From positions 62,001 through 126,000 of the forward strand of contig MU619267.1 of assembly GCA_025201805.1 (NCBI GenBank): a DNA stretch of 64,000 nt, written 5' to 3'. Shown here piece by piece: positions 3,284 through 64,000 of this stretch. The stretch's first letter is position 1. Each line of letters starts with the position of its first letter. Both the position numbers and the translations under genes were made by a program. Source of the DNA: Parasitella parasitica NRRL 2501. Lineage: Eukaryota; Fungi; Mucoromycota. Under the pieces are notes generated by a model that saw nothing but the letters and a program-made list of their open reading frames with translations, did no database searches and had not been told where the DNA came from.

Positions 3284-5911
3284 ATGGCAGATACGCTGAA
3301 AGATGTCCCTGAATTTTTCGAAACAGAGCTTGGAGAATCTATCATTGCTCGAACTGATGCTTTAGGTACGTTGTTTACATTTAGTTCAGGGACAATATAT
3401 TTAACCTCGACTATTTAGCCACATTTCGCGAGTTGGGACCTCCTGATTTGTGCCATATCATCAAAGTAAATGCTAAACCTGGTGTCAAAGAAGTACGTTT
3501 TAAATATGTTTTACATTTAGTTTGCATGGATTAACATCTGGTTATACTAGCTTGGGAGCTATCATTATATTTCGGGCGTAGATGCTTCCTCTTCAGCCTC
3601 ATTGGCAGCATATCTCAACTCCTTGACTTATTCCATGGTAAGGAAATTGATTTTTAACATCTTAACGTGCTTAGATTTTTTGTTAGGACGAGACTCAATC
3701 TTGGTTTACAAAGTCAAACTCTTGGCGAATTCGATCAGGAATTTATTGGTGAGTGCATTTTAAGATTCTCAGGGCGGTTGATTAAATTATAAATCACAGC
3801 TGCTACAATGCTTTTTCTCGAGTGGATGTCAGAGTCGAAGTAAAAATTCCTGGTGGAGTAGAAAGCTATTATGTGGATGTTCGTGGAGAAAGGTAAAAAT
3901 ATAGTATCTGGCAAAACCCATAGCTCAACAATGCTTTATAGGCACGAAGCTACGGCTGATATCTGGCAAGAAGCTTATTTGAGCGCTATACTAAGAGCTA
4001 TTTTGTATTCGGATGATAGTTATTATCGCTTAGCAGGATATAGAAAGGTTGATCCAATTACGAATTTGGCAACTGAAACTAGATTTTTGGAAGCTGTCGA
4101 AGCACTATTTTGGAAGGGTTGGCAACTAGGCAGTAAACCTGAGGTTCAGGTAGCAACATCAGTTCACAACCATCTTGCAGACGGCATCATGAAATATTTC
4201 AACGATAGCTTTAGATATGAACCTGCCATTGAGTTGTTCAGCAAACTACACAAACAAGATCCGGATGTGGGTTCTTTATTAGCTAAAGCTTATATTGGCC
4301 GAAATGAAGAAATTCAGGCAGTAAAAATTCTGTACGAAGATTTGAAGCTCTCCTCAATGAGCTTTCCATTGCTACACACTCAAATCGACTTTTTAAGATC
4401 CAAGGTATATAAACGATTGCATAGGTACCAATAATGTTCACTCTAATCGAATAATTGTAACTTAAGGGAGAGTATGACTTAGCGCTGAAATTAGCCAAAT
4501 ATGCCGTTGATACAACTCCTTCTGAATATCTAACTTGGGCTAAACTCACAGAAGGTAAACGGGTTATGGTATGAGACACAACAATATACTGACACGTTCT
4601 CTTAAGTCTATGTTGATCTCAAAGATTACAAAAATGCAAGTAAATGAGAATAGTAAATTATTCCTTGTAAGCTAAAACGAACCATGCTGCATGTAGGCAC
4701 TTTTGTCGTTGAATTCTTGTCCGATGTTTACATACAGTGAACGTGATATGCATCGCATGCCTTCACCCTCAAGGACCCATCTACCAATCAAACCTGACAT
4801 AGTCAGCTCTGGAATAATGGAAGAAGATGCAGCAGGTCGGGAATCAGAGGTTAGCAAGAGATCCTAAACTTTTGTTGCCATTCAATCTCATTTTTCGAAT
4901 TATATAGACTGATTCAGCACTTTCAAGGCTTCCAGCACCTGCTTTACACGGCACCTTTGCAAAGGCTTATTCACTGTTGACTAGATTGGCAAACGCATTA
5001 ACTTGGGACGAGCTATTACGGTGTAGATCCGAAGTTTTTGTTATGGAAGAGGAATATCGCAAACACAAAGCAAAAGAAGATCATCGCAAGAGCACTGTAT
5101 TACAATCAAACGATGAACTAAACAAGTTAAATCAAAAGCTAGAGGATACGACACTCGAAGAACCCAAGTCTGGATCAGGCAAACCTGCTGGTATCGAAAA
5201 ACCCAAACACGTCGCAGACGAGAGTGGCGAAATAGAGCAGCAATCAGAAGTGAATATCTCATTTGGCAATAAGAGACTTTGTGAGCGATGGCTTGACAAC
5301 CTTTTTATGGTTCTATATGAAGATTTAAGGGTTTATACGTTTTGGAGAGCTGAGGATGCTCATTATCGTGCTCAAAAGACAGCTTACAGAAAAACTGGTA
5401 CAGAATGGGAGCTTTTAGGTGATCTCGCATTAAGGTTATGGCATGAGGTTTGTTATATTATCTGTAATCTGCGGTATGTGCTGAATCGACATTCGTGTAT
5501 ATAATCTTAGAATGAAGCAAAAATTGCCCTTGAAATGTGCTTAGATCATAAATTCTCTGCTAAGGCCTGGATGAAACTATTGCAGATATATGTCAAAGAA
5601 GGAAATACACAAAAAGCCTTGTTGGCTGCAGTCAAACTAACTGTGTATCATGAAAGATGGTATCATGAAATAATGGTAAGTGCATGTGATTACTCAAATG
5701 TCGAAAATGATCATTTTCCTCACTTCAAAAATCTGGTTTACAGTACCCCACAGAAATTTCATGCAATTTAAATATCTTAATACGAAAGGTTGGTTTATCG
5801 AAAATGCAAAATATCCTGACTTCAATGAATTTGCCCAAGCCAGTTCAGAAGTTAATGACTCGATACTTTGATTATGGCGAATTATTTAAAGTTGAAGGCT
5901 ATGAAATGTAA
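3284..5911 (+). CDS. ChAPs family exomer cargo adaptor (Bch1/Bud7/Chs6-like), multi-exon
   Basis: MADTLKDVPEFFETELGESIIART; FRELGPPDL; YHYISGVDASSSASLAAYLNSL; ALLSLNSCPMF; KRLCERWLDNLFMVLYEDLR; EWELLGDLALRL are characteristic ChAPs motifs. Confidence 0.92.
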
Positions 5912-6267
5912 CCACCAAGATACTAGTACAAACATTTTATAAAGATAAACCTCAACATTTTTTTGAGAGAAAAAATACAAGAATATGTAGAATTTGTTGC
6001 TCTATATAATAATATGACTTTTTATTTCATAAATTATTTGCGCATAAACACCTTGTGTGCCTCAACAACAATTTGTGATGCTTTCAAAAAGTAACAGAGT
6101 AAACAAGACAGTTCATAGACGAGAGACTCTTCAAGCCTCGTCGTATCACATGCGGATCCCCTGCCCCCAAATTTTTTATAAATGCAGGCAGTCAACAGAA
6201 TGAGGGAGAGCTTTTAAATTTGTTTGCACTGTATAAAATACTTTATAGAAAGAGTACGGTATAATAA

Positions 6268-6900
6268 ATGAATAGTAACCATCAAGGCGGTTTCAGTCGA
6301 TATCCACTACCATCAAGAGAGTTGGTCGAATCAAAAAAAAAGAACAATGAACTTGTGTCTTTATCTCTTCTCTGCAAGGCAGTAACCCAGGAAGCAAAAC
6401 ATAACAAGAACTATGCAAACGCTGAATGGCTATTTAATGACATTATACTTGAATATTGCGCTCGTGAAAAAAAAGAAAATGGCAAATATTTCAATGTTAC
6501 TGATGAAAGATTTTTTGCAACGTCTATTACGACAATGGTTCGATATGCGAGCACGCCCGCAAAGGCAATGAACTATGCAACAATGTTCTTTAAAATGTAC
6601 AACGCTCGTATTAGGACACCTTCGAGAGAGATTATCATCTTGACAAATTTAATTTTTGCCCATACAAATCACCCCAGTCAGGAAAACATGGAGATAGCAT
6701 TAAGTTTGTTAAAACTTGCATTACAAATTGGCGTTTATACCGTTGATTTATCTTGCTACCCAGACCACAGAGAAGATAATCAGCATTTTGCCGACCCAGT
6801 GGAAGTGTTTACGACTGTTACGAAAAAAGTGCTACAGTATTTCAAACTAGCACTGTCATCTGACAAAACAGTGCTTATCCCCTTTGTGCGCCATTCTTAA
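6268..6900 (+). CDS. Hypothetical protein, 210 aa, intronless, probably alpha-helical
   Basis: Clean 633-bp ORF in AT-rich DNA, TATAAAA at ~6233 and an AAA-ATG context; no family recognised. Confidence 0.65.
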   Translation: MNSNHQGGFSRYPLPSRELVESKKKNNELVSLSLLCKAVTQEAKHNKNYANAEWLFNDIILEYCAREKKENGKYFNVTDERFFATSITTMVRYASTPAKAMNYATMFFKMYNARIRTPSREIIILTNLIFAHTNHPSQENMEIALSLLKLALQIGVYTVDLSCYPDHREDNQHFADPVEVFTTVTKKVLQYFKLALSSDKTVLIPFVRHS

Positions 6901-7416
6901 ATTCTGCTTAATCGAGTTTTTAGCCACCATAGTACACATAATTTGCTTGTTATCCTCAAGAAACGTTGTCTATAACGAAAGCCCATATCATAGCATTTTT
7001 TCCAATTGTGATTTTATCAGCAAAACGTTTTTCTAATAAAATCAGATGTTTCTTTCAAGCACCTCATTTGGTGGTGAGCATTAAAAATATGCGAGAAAAC
7101 GGTAGACCTGCTCGTTATAACCATAGACGAATTCATGACCTACAGAATTTATAATTATGTTATATAATTTTGCTATATCATACTATTTGTTTTTGAAAAG
7201 ACTGTCGAACACTGTGGCAGAGAGATGTAAATACAGCCAGACCTACGACGAGATCATCAACAAGTCCTTTGACGTCCTGACATTTTCCCCCGTAAGGCAA
7301 AATCAGATATTTCCAGGCTATCTGAATTTGAAGCAACTGTGGGAAAGTTGAGAAAAATTTCTTCTGCGTTGCACACGTCTTTTCTTTTCTTCCTCATTTT
7401 TATTGATTTATACAGC

Positions 7417-59218: not shown

Positions 59219-61216
59219 ATGACAAGTGTGGATCAACTTGGCATTGATACTGTTATTAACAAGAAACAATTCTCGAGTAATGTTGTGGTGAAAGATTGCC
59301 CTATAGTCGGTCGTTCTCTGGTTGCAAAACGGCCTCTTGTTCCTGGAGATGTCCTACTAGTAGAAGAACCCTTGATCAAGTATAACCTCAAGCCAATTTG
59401 TCGCTCGGCAAAATCACCCTACTTTTCTAAAAAGTTATGGAATGTCCTGAATTCAATGGTGCGTGATGTGGAAAATGATAAATTTCAGCAACAGTATGTA
59501 TCTGATCCAGCCATAGAAGAAGCTGCGCAGGAGCGAGAACAAAATGGCTACGACGATGATAACGACTCGAACGATTATAGCAGTAGTGAGGATGATGAGG
59601 ACGATCAAGAGGAGGGAGTGAAACCAGAGACAAACCCTGACTCGGATTTCTGTCCCGGTGTACCTGCAGCCATCATTGCCTATTTAGACATTCATCCACC
59701 CACAGAGCATTTCACAAATGTCAGAAATCGCAGGACATACAAGCGAGATGATTTCGACTTTTTCTATTACCCCAATTCAGACATTGAGCCAGCTTGGCTA
59801 GATCATAAAACTGTCAAATTGATTCATACAGTAACGCAAAAGGTAGCCGACACGATACCTTTATATTCTCATGTCGATCCGTATGATCTGCGTAGCTTTG
59901 TACTCAAGATTTACTCTAATGCACACACGGTAGCATTGCCTCGAAGCAGAACTATGCCGACTCATCGATCCAAAAAGGCTCGCCGACAAATGTACATGGC
60001 TAAATTTGGAGATAATGTCACTTATTGGGGAGAAGATGCCGTCGATCCTCCGAGTAATCCCACTATTGCCTTGCTGCGTTGGGGTTCCAAGTTTGCCCAC
60101 TCTTGCTCACCCAACATGTTTTTACGTTTTGAGCCTGGCAACAATGCTATGGTATTTACAATAACTCGCCCAGTGAAAGAAGGTCAAGTGCTGTCTTTTT
60201 CTTATCTTCCTGAAGATGACTCAACTGTTGGTGGTTTAGTGTTGGGGAGTACGTCTGACCGTAGAGCCAAGCTTCAAAAATTCAAGTTTTTCGAATGTTT
60301 GTGTGAGCGTTGTGTAGATTGGGATTGGTCCAGAGGTGTCACTTGCAATGCTTGTCGTGAACCTACTAGTTTCCGTGACGATAAGAAAGTTTGGACATGT
60401 TTCTTATGCCAAGCACAGAACAGCGATGATGAGGCTACGTTTATTGGTGAACGTGAAGAAAGTGTACAGCAGATGGTTATGGGATTCGTTGCTCGTATTC
60501 ATGGCCATCGCCGTATGAACGAAAGTACGATGCGCATGATGGAACCTTATCTTTTAAATTTATTAACTTCAGCACCTGAAAAGAACGAGGTGGCTGTACC
60601 AAAAAACCATTGGACTTATGGTGTCATTCATTCCTTATTGGCATCGTATCATTTGAACCTATTTCCTCAATCTTTTGGTAAAGGATTGGCTGCTCAGTTG
60701 GGCCTAACAGTGCAAGGTTTGGAAGAGGCTTTAGTTTATATCGAATTTTTGAACAATACGATCCGGACACATCCCAACTATACCAATGCTTGTCCTGTCA
60801 CTTTACATGGTGGTAATTTGATGGCGGCCTTCTTTGCTGGCTGGCGTGTACTGACGTTGGTGATTGATCTTGTGATGGATAGTACTGAAAATAAGTATGC
60901 AAACTTTATCAATGAAAAGGATTCTGATGAAGAAGATCATGAAGAAGATCCTGAGAGCTGCCAAGAAGGGGTGATAAAAAATGCACCGAAGCCTGTTGCA
61001 AAGAGCCCAGACATTGTGTTGATTGCATTGAATCAAGATTGGGTTGTCCCGCTAACTAAAATTTCAAATATTGTCAACAAAGAATGGATACCCCTGGTGG
61101 AACAAGTATTTACATCGCATCAGCCAGCCGTTGTTCGAGACATGATAGCTCAAATCATATCTTTTGCTGATAGAATCGAAAAGACCTCTTTCTCCTCTAG
61201 TGTCTCCATCCCCTAA
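59219..61216 (+). CDS. SET domain protein, SMYD/Set5-6-like, intronless
   Basis: GRSLVAKRPLVPGDVLLVEEP (SET-N); YSNAH; SKFAHSCSPN; RPVKEGQVLSFSYL; RRAKLQKFKFFECLCERC post-SET. Confidence 0.85.
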   Translation: MTSVDQLGIDTVINKKQFSSNVVVKDCPIVGRSLVAKRPLVPGDVLLVEEPLIKYNLKPICRSAKSPYFSKKLWNVLNSMVRDVENDKFQQQYVSDPAIEEAAQEREQNGYDDDNDSNDYSSSEDDEDDQEEGVKPETNPDSDFCPGVPAAIIAYLDIHPPTEHFTNVRNRRTYKRDDFDFFYYPNSDIEPAWLDHKTVKLIHTVTQKVADTIPLYSHVDPYDLRSFVLKIYSNAHTVALPRSRTMPTHRSKKARRQMYMAKFGDNVTYWGEDAVDPPSNPTIALLRWGSKFAHSCSPNMFLRFEPGNNAMVFTITRPVKEGQVLSFSYLPEDDSTVGGLVLGSTSDRRAKLQKFKFFECLCERCVDWDWSRGVTCNACREPTSFRDDKKVWTCFLCQAQNSDDEATFIGEREESVQQMVMGFVARIHGHRRMNESTMRMMEPYLLNLLTSAPEKNEVAVPKNHWTYGVIHSLLASYHLNLFPQSFGKGLAAQLGLTVQGLEEALVYIEFLNNTIRTHPNYTNACPVTLHGGNLMAAFFAGWRVLTLVIDLVMDSTENKYANFINEKDSDEEDHEEDPESCQEGVIKNAPKPVAKSPDIVLIALNQDWVVPLTKISNIVNKEWIPLVEQVFTSHQPAVVRDMIAQIISFADRIEKTSFSSSVSIP

Positions 61217-62164
61217 TTAATACAGTTTGATTCAATAAATAATAACAATTCTTTGTGTCGGGTAGTAGTGTTCCTTCATACAATCCTTAAATTGATCAAG
61301 TACACACTTCGCTGTATCAGGGCCAAAAAGAAAAAATAACGGCATAAATACTGGAAGAAGTTATTGAGCTACGAGTTGCGGCCACAAAGCTAATTGACTT
61401 TCACAGGTCAATTTTGACATCTACATCACAAAAAAGCTGCTTAGCTGACTTTATTCAAGAACGATAGTGAAACAATGCTGCCACAACCCGAAACTTTTAA
61501 TAAAGAAGATATGTATTTTACTCATCAATGAGTTTTGCGATTCTGCCAAGTCCTACTTAACAAGGGCATAGCAGTAGACAATTGATATGACAAAAAAAGG
61601 GAAAATAATAAAGACTTTTAATTCACCCAGATAACAGAAGTTGTTATCTTTTCATATATTGACTATAGTTACGAGAATTAATCATTTACAATAATACAAC
61701 AACTTAGTCATGTTTAACACTTATTTAGCTATCATTATGCAGCATCAGCGTTTCAATAGCGGTCAGATTTTCCACAAACATCTGTTAATCATCTCTGCTA
61801 TAAAAAGAACCGTACCACTGCGATTCAACTTGGAAACATCTTTTTATTGAAATCTAGAAAGTTCTCACCAGAAGCCACAGATTTTCGTGTATAATCGCTG
61901 GTAGGCTTCGATGAAAAGCAAAATCAGAGCTTCTCTTATGCGCCATCAAATCAGGCATGATTATCACTACACGAACATAACTTGCTTTTCACTAGGCGAT
62001 GTCTTTATCAAAAGTTATCTGCAAAAACAGGTTTTATTGAGATCTGCAAGATCGAAATAAGAAAAGTATTGGATAAAACGTTGAATTAACGAGATACGAA
62101 AACTTGAGATTACTTTATTAAAGATTCAACTTTGCATCTGCTATTTATACTTTTTACAACTACA

Positions 62165-62803
62165 TAAATTTTTGGTGACTTTTTTAAAATACTAGTTGAT
62201 ACTAATCGATAAGAATAATTTGCAAGCAACATCATATCCTTAACAGGGTACGATGCATTATTGTACTACAAGGTTATTGATCTTTGATCTGACAGTACCT
62301 TATTGTTTGTCAATCATACAGATCTCTGTTACAGATAACCTTCCTGATTTGAAACAAAGACTTTATTCTCCTGTTTCGACAAGTATAACAACACATCATT
62401 GGAAAATCTTAATTGAAGTACACTATCATGATCTCCTATCCTACATTATGGCAGATTAGGTTTATTTTTAATAATTTATCTTGAATATCACATATTTGCT
62501 CATAACTTCTTGATCAGCCATAAATTAAGATAAGAGATCATGATAATGTACTTCAATTGAAAATTGGGAGATTAACCAATGATATGTTGTTACACTTGTC
62601 GAAACAGAAGAATAAAGTCTCTGTTTCAGATCAAGAAGGTTTTGTCTGTAACACAGATCTGTGTGATTGACAAACATTAAGGCACTGTCAGGTCAAAGAT
62701 GAATAACCTTGTAGTATAATAGTATATCGTAGCCTGTTGGGGATGATGTTACTTACAAATTACTCTTATTGATTAGTTTCTAAAATAGGTCACCAAAAAT
62801 TTA
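62165..62803. repeat. Long foldback inverted repeat: ~295-bp arms (62165-~62460 and ~62509-62803), ~50-nt spacer
   Basis: Ends TAAATTTTTGGTGAC / GTCACCAAAAATTTA; internal blocks such as TACTACAAGGTTATT / AATAACCTTGTAGTA, TGTTTGTCAATCA / TGATTGACAAACA and CTGTTTCGACAAGT / ACTTGTCGAAACAG are reverse complements in mirror order. Confidence 0.93.
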
Positions 62804-62842
62804 CACCTTTTGCCAAAACGATGTTGCAAGAAAAGAAATTAA

Positions 62843-62920
62843 AGTGTCGCACTTTTACAAAAATCAGTGTCGTATGTTTCTAGAAAAGAGTGTCGCACAA
62901 TTCAGAGAAATAGTGTCGTG
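62843..62920 (+). repeat. Phased array of AGTGTCG motifs with exact 23-bp period
   Basis: AGTGTCG starts at 62843, 62866, 62889 and 62912, with divergent A/T-rich spacers; a degenerate copy (GATGTTGCA) sits in phase at 62820. Confidence 0.85.
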
Positions 62921-62956
62921 CTTTTCAAAAAAAGGACATGTCAGATATATTGTTCT

Positions 62957-63016
62957 TTTCACCGTAGTCATTATCATGGTCATTATCATGGTCTTTACCG
63001 TTGTCATTACCGTGGT
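62957..63016 (+). repeat. 12-bp minisatellite, ~5 copies (consensus CATTAYCRTGGT)
   Basis: tttcaccgtagt cattatcatggt cattatcatggt ctttaccgttgt cattaccgtggt. Confidence 0.85.
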
Positions 63017-63634
63017 CACGCCTAGGTTTTTTTGTTAACCTGAGTGATTTCAAATAAAGAAAACAGCATTCAAGCTTTAGAAAAGTTCCAAGCATTAAGC
63101 GATCAATTTGAGGTGTGCTATTTATCTGATCCGGCAATTCCCGTACTTGCAACTAAATTACAGATTTCAAAGTATCCGTTAGCCTTTTACACCTACAAGT
63201 CCTGTGAACTATAGCCAGTGGCACCTATAAGGATATACAAGCACCTTAATACGAAGGGCTTAAGTCGAGCTACTTATTGCTCTTAATTCTTCTTTTTGAA
63301 ACATAAATACTCTATATAAAATAAAAATTTAATATGTGGTCTGACTAGTTGACTATCGAAAAAGGTTATCTTTATTCACTGATGGTTATAAAAACATCGA
63401 GCTTTGTCAAAGAAAAACTGCAGGGTATGCTGTCGTAAAAAAATAAGAGTGCATTAATTTACGGGGTTATTCGCGCTATGGGAAGATTTAAGTTACGAGC
63501 ACCAACATAGGTTACCTAAAGGTAATTTTCAAGTTAAATAAAACGAACACCATTCTTGGCTAGTGGAAACAAATATCTTCTGCTAATAATAGTAATATGA
63601 AGAAAAGAAAGATGATACTGGAATTGGTATAGTT

Positions 63635-64000
63635 TTATAGGGATCTTTGGATCGGCCGTGTTCTGCAATCAAACTTCTTCATAGCCTTTGGGTCTTGAAG
63701 TAACAGCTCTGCTGCATAAATTTCAACTTCGTTTGTGATAGGGAGTCTGTCAACTACTATTTTTGTGATGTTTTTTTGCTCGCTGAAATAATAGATCAAT
63801 CAGGTGTCAATATATGTAGTATTTACTTGCTTTTTACCCGAGAAATTCCTTCAAATCTTCAACGTTTGTCGTTAAACCTGCGTAATCCAATACGACCAAT
63901 ATAACTTCTTTTTTGGTGATGTTTAAAAACTCAATAAAATCTAAAAGGCACAATATATTAATTCAAGAATATCTTCAGCATGTACTGCCTATTACCTGTC
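63635..64000 (-). CDS. 3' part of a spliced gene running off the window; hypothetical protein with a possible resolvase/serine-recombinase-like fold
   Basis: Two GT-AG introns (63995-63941 and 63837-63783) join an uninterrupted frame: DFIEFLNITKKEVILVVLDYAGLTTNVEDLKEFLG|EQKNITKIVVDRLPITNEVEIYAAELLLQDPKAMKKFDCRTRPIQRSL*. Not in the ORF track. Confidence 0.75.

Follow-up and report, generated by a model that had tools for sequence, protein, structure and literature searches.

A candidate non-autonomous Tc1/mariner-family transposon with a recombinase-like cargo gene in Parasitella parasitica

Tc1/mariner (IS630-Tc1-mariner) elements of the 'IR-DR' type are flanked by TA and end in long terminal inverted repeats (TIRs) that contain several phased short motifs; Tc3 and Sleeping Beauty-type elements have several transposase-binding repeats within long TIRs. 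Here, we analyzed a 64,000-nt stretch of the genome of Parasitella parasitica NRRL 2501 (G000), which corresponds to contig MU619267.1 (C31), positions 62001-126000, and is referred to as the window; positions are counted on the whole stretch. The end of this window (62803-64000) probably corresponds to the left third of a non-autonomous transposon of the Tc1/mariner family that is 3705 bp long, carries a broken cargo gene with a recombinase fold and is inserted at a TA of a foldback repeat. Like Tc1/mariner elements, this element has TA flanks and long TIRs with phased motifs, and its autonomous relatives are 1.6-1.7 kb long and encode a DDE_3 transposase with weak helix-turn-helix (HTH) matches. 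Unlike them, it measures 3.7 kb without a DDE gene, contains four to five sites with a strict period of 23 bp, and has TIRs that reach inward over a second array, a promoter, and a portion of the first exon of an unrelated cargo gene.

In Rhizopus, Mucor, and Phycomyces, Fanzor1 rides in TIR transposons that do not encode a transposase themselves (PMC3627910). The cargo described here similarly appears to be a non-DDE protein of prokaryotic mobile-element ancestry traveling as a passenger of a TIR transposon in Mucorales, but its predicted fold is that of a serine recombinase and not of a TnpB-like nuclease, and no such family is included in PMC3627910. The serine recombinases described in eukaryotes are the IS607-like TnpA proteins of a few Fanzor2 elements and of giant viruses only, and the Fanzor2 elements with IS607-like TnpA have no TIRs or target site duplications (PMC3627910). 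TnpA of the IS607 family has a winged helix before the catalytic domain and binds multiple subterminal repeats (PMC6188088). While serine recombinases are thus almost unknown in eukaryotic genomes, the Mucorales family considered here has hundreds of diverged members, which are found in transposon ends and palindromes, and full-text searches of open-access papers and bioRxiv preprints gave no account of a serine-recombinase-like family from this order. The family raises the questions of whether a eukaryotic, spliced relative of the serine recombinases still rearranges DNA and whether Tc1 elements serve as its vehicles.

Ends of the 3.7-kb element and its transposase-encoding relatives

The left end of the element contains the following features:

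62802 to 62803, junction: TA at the left junction (TA/CACC...); the right junction reads ...GGTG/TA
62803 to 63147, plus strand: left TIR, with its partner at window-equivalent 66096-66507
62843 to 62934, plus strand: array of (A)GTGTCG(C/T)A, four units phased at 23 bp, proposed Tc1 transposase binding sites
62961/62967 to 63018, plus strand: 12-bp minisatellite with 4.3 copies of a unit of approximately GTCATTAYCATG, located in the inner portion of the inverted repeat, which is associated with the gene
63044 to 63214, plus strand: open reading frame (ORF) corresponding to the 5' portion of exon 1, present here as an inverted and decaying copy (...FEVCYLSDPAIPVL...); the inverted repeat itself ends at 63147 and 66096

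To follow the element beyond the window, we used the flanking sequence C31:122001-132000 (L004), in which a position equals the window position minus 60000. The segment at L004 2797-3147 recurs in inverted orientation at 6096-6513 with 95-97% identity, and the arms contain complementary stretches of up to 132 nt (96%) and 95 nt (95%). The TIRs are 345-412 bp long and differ by one indel of ~90 bp, and the element thus bounded is 3705 bp long (window 62803-66507, C31:124803-128507). Both arrays and the coding piece of exon 1 are present in inverted order at both element ends, 3.3 kb apart; the copy of exon 1 on the functional side is the one in the right arm. Because the arrays recur inverted 3.3 kb away, they sit within long TIRs.

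The termini are multicopy. The terminal sequence ACACCTTTTGCCAAAA(Y)GATG has 30 copies in the genome, 15 on each strand, while a reversed control gave none, and several of these matches are paired at distances of 1.5-5 kb. In 24 of 25 termini of this TIR family, a T precedes ACACC. The TA/CACC...GGTG/TA flanks of the present element fit the TA duplication of Tc1/mariner elements; a 2-bp TA crossover by a serine recombinase would look identical. Long TIRs, TA flanks, and multicopy termini all support the proposal of an earlier note on this DNA, which was made from the window alone, that a mobile element ends in this stretch.

The motif AGTGTCG is located at 62843, 62866, 62889, and 62912, i.e. 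at a spacing of exactly 23 bp, and GATGTTGCA, which is related to the array unit, lies one period outward at ~62819. Over the whole window, the 7-mer AGTGTCG shows no enrichment (6 observed versus 3.5 expected). What departs from randomness is its phased clustering, which is seen again in the right arm and in other elements. The earlier note had reported the 12-bp minisatellite, the 23-bp AGTGTCG array, and a large foldback, all of which we recovered; the array does not, however, stop right at the foldback as stated there, the two being separated by the ~40-bp element terminus (62803-62842).

Termini that match those of the 3.7-kb element with two mismatches enclose DDE_3 matches on C8, C65, and C5. 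The copies on C8 and C65 are 1698 bp long with the DDE_3 match within 443-aa open frames, and the ORF on C8 (439 aa) matches DDE_3 with an E value of 3e-28 and HTH domains weakly. Elements on C182/C225 and on C43 have TIRs that are 90-91% identical to those of the 3.7-kb element and contain pieces of DDE_3. In the TIRs of the autonomous copies, (A/T)(G/T)(T/A)GTCGCA-like units are located at offsets 19, 42, 65, 88, 111, and 134, and the units of the 3.7-kb element, at offsets 42, 65, 88, and 111, are in the same register as those of the autonomous copies on C8 and C65; TIRs of other family members likewise contain TGTCGCA-like units with this phasing. Because this phasing is common to the DDE_3-encoding relatives, the 23-bp array is a Tc1 feature rather than an IS607-style end. 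It is a family feature of a Tc1-type 'IR-DR' end and, by analogy with other Tc1 elements, may be the array to which the DDE_3 transposase binds. We detected no DDE_3 match within C31:124803-128507, of which 271 bp (L004 4539-4810, within the nested repeat described below) read as N, and the element is therefore non-autonomous.

Together, these data fit a scheme in which the element would have inserted at a TA within an abundant foldback repeat, and in which the TIRs would consist of two layers. The outer ~135 bp would be a Tc1 terminus with a 23-bp TGTCG(C/T)A array bound by a DDE_3 transposase, which could be supplied in trans by the 1.5- to 1.7-kb relatives with homologous ends. The 12-bp minisatellite would belong to the inner layer, together with a promoter region and the 5' portion of the first cargo exon.

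Alternatively, the recombinase-like protein itself could mobilize an array-bounded unit; the arrays would be its binding sites as in IS607, and the Tc1 ends would be secondary, having been ridden or captured. We regard this as quite unlikely, given that this element has canonical Tc1-type termini and TA flanks and that its 23-bp array is common to DDE_3-encoding elements. For the same reasons, we do not follow the earlier proposals that repeat arrays replace TIRs in an IS607-like manner, given that the arrays lie within long TIRs, or that the 23-bp array bounds a recombinase unit, given that the same array bounds Tc1 elements. That proposal had also pointed to Fanzor/TnpB as a partner; none of the 49 PF07282 matches is located within 80 kb of any recombinase-like copy.

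At L046 2514-7695 (C106:86514-91695), we observed a further element that has these Tc1 termini as well as the 23-bp array. It is 5.2 kb long and carries a different cargo, namely, ORFs with a C2H2-like motif and internal duplications, for which no recombinase-like match was reported; its own inner array consists of 4-8 copies of TTGGTCGGGTCC plus a T-run. Separately, recombinase-like copies at C71:83973-85154, C56:20874-22734, and C29:17151-24191 lie within 1-3 kb of DDE_3 matches, the one on C29 being located between two inverted DDE_3 genes. This proximity points to a recurrent association of the recombinase-like genes with Tc1 elements from several families.

The cargo gene and its protein family

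The pieces of the cargo gene were searched exon by exon using a family profile (A2) of 59 sequences and using the full-length homologue P0083 (Hesseltinella, 362 aa). Within the window, the gene reads as follows:

63635 to 63782, minus strand: last exon including the stop codon (...KIVVDRLP...FDCRTRPIQRSL, stop); hhalign against A2, 98.5%, E 3.7e-15, P0083 residues 313-361
63783 to 63837, minus strand: 55-nt GT..AG intron, the removal of which restores ...KEFLGEQKNITK..., colinear with the family
63838 to 63940, minus strand: penultimate exon (DFIEFL...VILVVLDYAGLTTNVEDLKEFL); hhalign against A2, 97.7%, E 2.3e-12, P0083 residues 281-313
63941 to 63995, minus strand: 55-nt GT..AG intron, read from the sequence
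63996 to 64000, minus strand: 3' end of the GYVRKS exon, which continues to window-equivalent 64277

Both full exons thus match the family profile, and the spliced minus-strand gene end with a stop at 63635 that the earlier note had called is confirmed. The GY.RKS motif, which had been proposed there to lie upstream, is present as GYVRKS just beyond the window on the minus strand (L004 3958-4323). In BLASTP, the GYVRKS exon (L004:3997-4275, minus strand) is 38% identical to residues 182-266 of P0083 (E 6e-16). The middle exon matches P0083 from residue 102 to ~170 (E 1e-9), exon 1 in the right arm matches residues 35-65 (E 3e-10), and all gene pieces are colinear with P0083.

Contrary to the earlier note, the gene is not intact. 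Upstream, beyond the window, a nested repeat of ~1.35 kb (L004 ~4351-5698) splits it between the positions equivalent to P0083 residues ~170 and ~175. This repeat has at least 50 copies in the genome with 77-99% identity and contains three CxxCGxxGHxRS knuckle motifs; to judge from its copies, the family looks young. The CCHC-like knuckles (L004 4900-5262) were considered as a candidate N-terminus of the protein and rejected, given that they are part of the nested repeat and missing from full-length homologues. For annotation, the lesson is that an ordinary Tc1 family explains the 23-bp array and that this gene copy, of which the 3' exons are intact, is, judging by its sequence, probably broken and non-functional.

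With neither a call in the ORF track nor a Pfam match, the stretch might be read as chance open frames next to ordinary microsatellites, with no gene and no element. This reading is extremely improbable: the exons match the profile of a 59-sequence family at 97.7-98.5%, the introns are bounded by GT..AG and their removal restores the reading frame, and the arrays are found again in the partner arm, in inverted form, as well as at about 30 termini in the genome.

The genome encodes at least 20 diverged paralogues, which share 25-46% identity in the GYxRKS exon. Searched against 1.84 billion representatives, a profile of 12 of these paralogues matched 451 clusters at E≤1e-10 and 740 at the looser cutoff of E≤1e-3, so the family has at least 740 clusters. 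Complete models comprise ~350-360 aa. The named matches, from Hesseltinella, Rhizopus arrhizus, and Sporodiniella, are all annotated as 'hypothetical protein' without Pfam domains, in line with the description in the earlier note of multicopy, unannotated Mucorales proteins. In the ESM Atlas, the nearest clusters by sequence features are from Mucoromycota only, and the family is restricted to Mucorales.

Predicted fold and relation to serine recombinases

An AlphaFold2 model of P0083, generated with a 59-sequence alignment, had a pLDDT of 91 and a pTM of 0.80. In a comparison with 48,161 PDB representatives using VIA-align, the 13 best chains were all serine-recombinase catalytic domains (Z 9.9-6.9), and the next unrelated protein class with this fold scored Z 5.5. 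The best chains include TP901-1 integrase (Z 9.9), gamma-delta resolvase (2rsl; 9.8), Sin (5c31; 9.4), Tn3 resolvase (5cy1; 9.2), M. jannaschii 3lhk (9.1), and the IS607-like IS1535 TnpA (6dgb; 7.1), as well as Bxb1, phiC31, and TnpX. Foldseek likewise ranked the serine-recombinase family first (E ~0.01, probability 0.97), and for an independent ESM Atlas model the nearest clusters were PF00239 with TM scores of 0.53-0.63. These models support that the family has a serine-recombinase catalytic fold.

The structural alignments span model residues ~206-356. Because model residue 206 falls on residue 1 of the aligned chains, Y211, R213, and S215 fall on Tyr6, Arg8, and Ser10, and the Y-x-R-x-S nucleophile motif at the end of strand 1, which is GYVRKS in the present gene, is in register. 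G210, Y211, R213, K214, S215, R259, and D260 of P0083 are 97-100% conserved; R238, S239, S247, and G277 are 91-95% conserved, and G301, which lies in the D-x-A-G loop, is 87% conserved. Among the other arginines, those at positions 224, 354, and 360 of P0083 are conserved as well. What was found is therefore a predicted resolvase fold together with a Ser motif, in a multicopy gene and not in a single-copy, syntenic one; this is the outcome on which the earlier note had made its proposal depend.

Arg68 and Arg71 are required for catalysis in known serine recombinases. In the present family, the loop after strand 3 reads D-(Y/F/H)-A-G-(L/I) and not D-R-L-G-R, with DFAGL as the consensus; in the window, the penultimate exon covers strand 3 and a DYAGL loop that stands where DRLGR is expected, which agrees with the earlier observation of AGLTT in place of DRL.R. 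In a register set by secondary-structure order and a low-confidence hhalign alignment, the equivalents of Arg68 and Arg71 appear to be missing, while those of Arg45 and Asp67 are likely conserved. After strand 4, the P0083 model has one short strand and two short helices, and no long helix E. Residues 86-184 are similar in structure to DNA-binding domains of the winged-helix type (RFX, Z 6.2), such that the predicted domain order is an N-terminal domain, a winged helix, and the C-terminal serine-recombinase catalytic fold.

Compared to small serine recombinases (gamma-delta/Tn3 resolvase, Sin, and Hin/Gin/Pin), the family shares the catalytic fold and Y-x-R-x-S at the end of strand 1, and shares with the Hin/Gin/Pin invertases the location of the gene between inverted repeats. 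It differs from them in having no significant sequence similarity, in having D-Y/F-A-G-L for DRLGR, in showing no long helix E in the P0083 model, in lacking a C-terminal HTH, and in being eukaryotic and spliced. Compared to IS607-family TnpA, it shares the order of winged helix and serine-recombinase domain and the short direct repeats near gene or element ends, but its model shows no helix-E bundle, and it has neither the DRLxR arginines nor a Pfam Resolvase match; TIRs and TA flanks, introns, the extra N-terminal domain, and the absence of a nearby Fanzor gene further distinguish it from the IS607 type, in which TIRs and target site duplications are absent and a TnpB/Fanzor partner is optional.

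These features bear differently on what the protein does. In favor of a protein that mobilizes its own array-bounded unit, Y-x-R-K-S is near-invariant across 59 representatives, which argues for a retained nucleophile, and a winged helix precedes the catalytic domain as in IS607-family TnpA; the replacement of the Arg68 and Arg71 equivalents by Y/F/H and L/I and the absence of a long helix E from the model argue against it. A second possibility is that the protein descends from a serine recombinase but is catalytically dead and functions as a sequence-specific DNA-binding factor, for instance as an autoregulator, a transposon regulator, or an anti-silencing factor, and is passively carried by Tc1 elements and palindromic duplications. 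The apparent loss of two of three catalytic arginines and of helix E, the presence of the winged-helix domain, and the operator-like position of the arrays, which in several copies end ~20-30 bp upstream of the start codon, are consistent with this possibility. We nevertheless regard it as somewhat unlikely, because Y-x-R-K-S and the R-D pair are strictly conserved over hundreds of diverged clusters, which would be difficult to account for if no chemistry took place at that site, and because the palindromic contexts suggest DNA rearrangement.

Several observations weigh against a non-autonomous Tc1/mariner-family transposon with a broken recombinase-fold cargo gene. First, PF00239 was matched neither by the exons in the window, nor by 12 paralogue pieces, nor by 59 full or partial homologues at E≤10, and had no match across the whole genome at E≤0.1; likewise, no serine-recombinase (Resolvase) chain was among the PDB sequence-profile matches. 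Against a profile of Pin-type invertases, for which a PinE word search had returned only invertases that are at least 84% identical, hhalign gave a colinear but not significant match (4.5-7% probability). The homology to Resolvase would therefore rest on predicted structure and one short motif, and the residue mapping beyond strand 1 on secondary-structure order and a low-confidence alignment. Of the relation to serine recombinases proposed in the earlier note, the catalytic fold and the Ser motif are thus supported, whereas the Pfam Resolvase match is not, and in the comparison with Resolvase suggested there, the structure search with Foldseek placed the serine-recombinase family on top while no sequence method gave a link to PF00239. 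Second, the interior of the element is single-copy in the genome, and the composite may never have moved as a unit; what points to mobilization in trans is the shared ends. Third, a simple capture leaves the perfect symmetry of the Tc1/gene junction in both arms unexplained. Finally, the nested repeat might be removed by splicing.

Surroundings of other copies and the insertion target

We read the context of the paralogues from 3.3-kb loci. Paralogues at L007, L012, and L017 are also located between inverted repeats, which are 1.3-2.3 kb apart. The arrays in the arms of paralogues have differing units, including a 12-bp unit (CTTGTCCATTAC), a 12- to 15-bp unit (TTTACGTGGTCA), a 10-bp unit (TGGACCAACC), and a 22-bp unit on C209, where the gene copy is uninterrupted. 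Comparable arrays, with periods of 10-12 or 21-23 bp but differing in sequence, are found beside paralogues in this genome as well as homologues in Hesseltinella. The gene for P0083 has a 12-bp array (AACTCGGGCTTC) with 11 and 20 copies that ends ~30 bp before the ATG in both arms, and in addition an outer 22-bp array. Because arrays recur next to the genes in this manner, the 12-bp minisatellite of the 3.7-kb element is a gene-associated layer and the 23-bp array is the Tc1 layer.

Two Hesseltinella vesiculosa loci illustrate the range of contexts. The gene for P0147 (L058 522-9279, MCGT01000025.1) is centered in a palindrome with arms of ~3 kb that are 87-90% identical, and each arm contains a mirrored gene of ~300 aa and a long 10-bp tandem array. 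The gene for P0086 (L056, MCGT01000018.1) has no flanking inverted repeat and is followed downstream, at 5824-7204, by 32 copies of a 43-bp unit consisting of two ~21-bp AAAAAAGTGAACCGGTTCAGC-like repeats, which compare with the 22-bp unit on C209.

The contexts also bear on whether the protein mobilizes a unit of its own. Short-period arrays were found at nearly every copy examined, including in another genus, with the period kept and the sequence not; genes are often centered in palindromes with arms of 0.2 to 3 kb; and between the C3 and C37 copies, similarity is confined to one segment, which begins exactly at the array on both sides. On the other hand, some homologues (L056 and L057) have no inverted repeats, and the informative boundary comes from this one pair of copies. 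Recurrent inner arrays and palindromes are not explained by Tc1 elements, and the winged-helix domain may bind the inner arrays. Tentatively, we suggest that the protein is a DNA-binding, possibly still catalytic relative of the recombinases that recognizes short-period arrays beside its own gene. A more far-reaching version, in which the family represents a eukaryotic lineage of the serine recombinases that is highly diverged yet still active, has an IS607-like order of domains, binds the arrays and cuts, inverts, or copies the array-bounded unit, thereby creating palindromes, and hitch-hikes on Tc1 ends, seems unlikely to us. If it were true, it would amount to an intron-bearing, serine-recombinase-based eukaryotic mobile system with a non-canonical active site. 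If the proteins are active, they would constitute a new source of compact recombinases functional in eukaryotic nuclei, as well as a force shaping the genomes of Mucorales, a group that includes human pathogens.

Returning to the proposed Tc1/mariner-family transposon, its 3.7 kb are located between the right arm of a foldback and the right copy of an outer segment that accompanies the foldback:

62037 to 62137: outer segment of an unrelated, abundant foldback-type repeat, with an inverted partner at window-equivalent 66522-66623
62150 to 62802: foldback repeat with arms at 62236-62456 and 62513-62744, the target DNA of the insertion

The foldback structure itself lies at 62165-62803. The repeat has at least 90 matches in the genome that are 81-94% identical, with arms of ~315 bp. 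The 100-bp outer segment has >40 scored genome copies with ~90% identity and is usually located 12-13 bp from a foldback arm. Removal of the element together with one TA leaves a gap of 13 bp, which fits an insertion with TA duplication, although weakly, the alignment ends being fuzzy. We also considered the pair 62037-62137/66522-66623 as an extension of the TIRs and rejected it; together with the foldback, it forms a separate repeat of ~100 or more copies. Just to the left of these repeats, an uninterrupted 665-aa ORF at 59219-61216 (plus strand) is probably a host gene.

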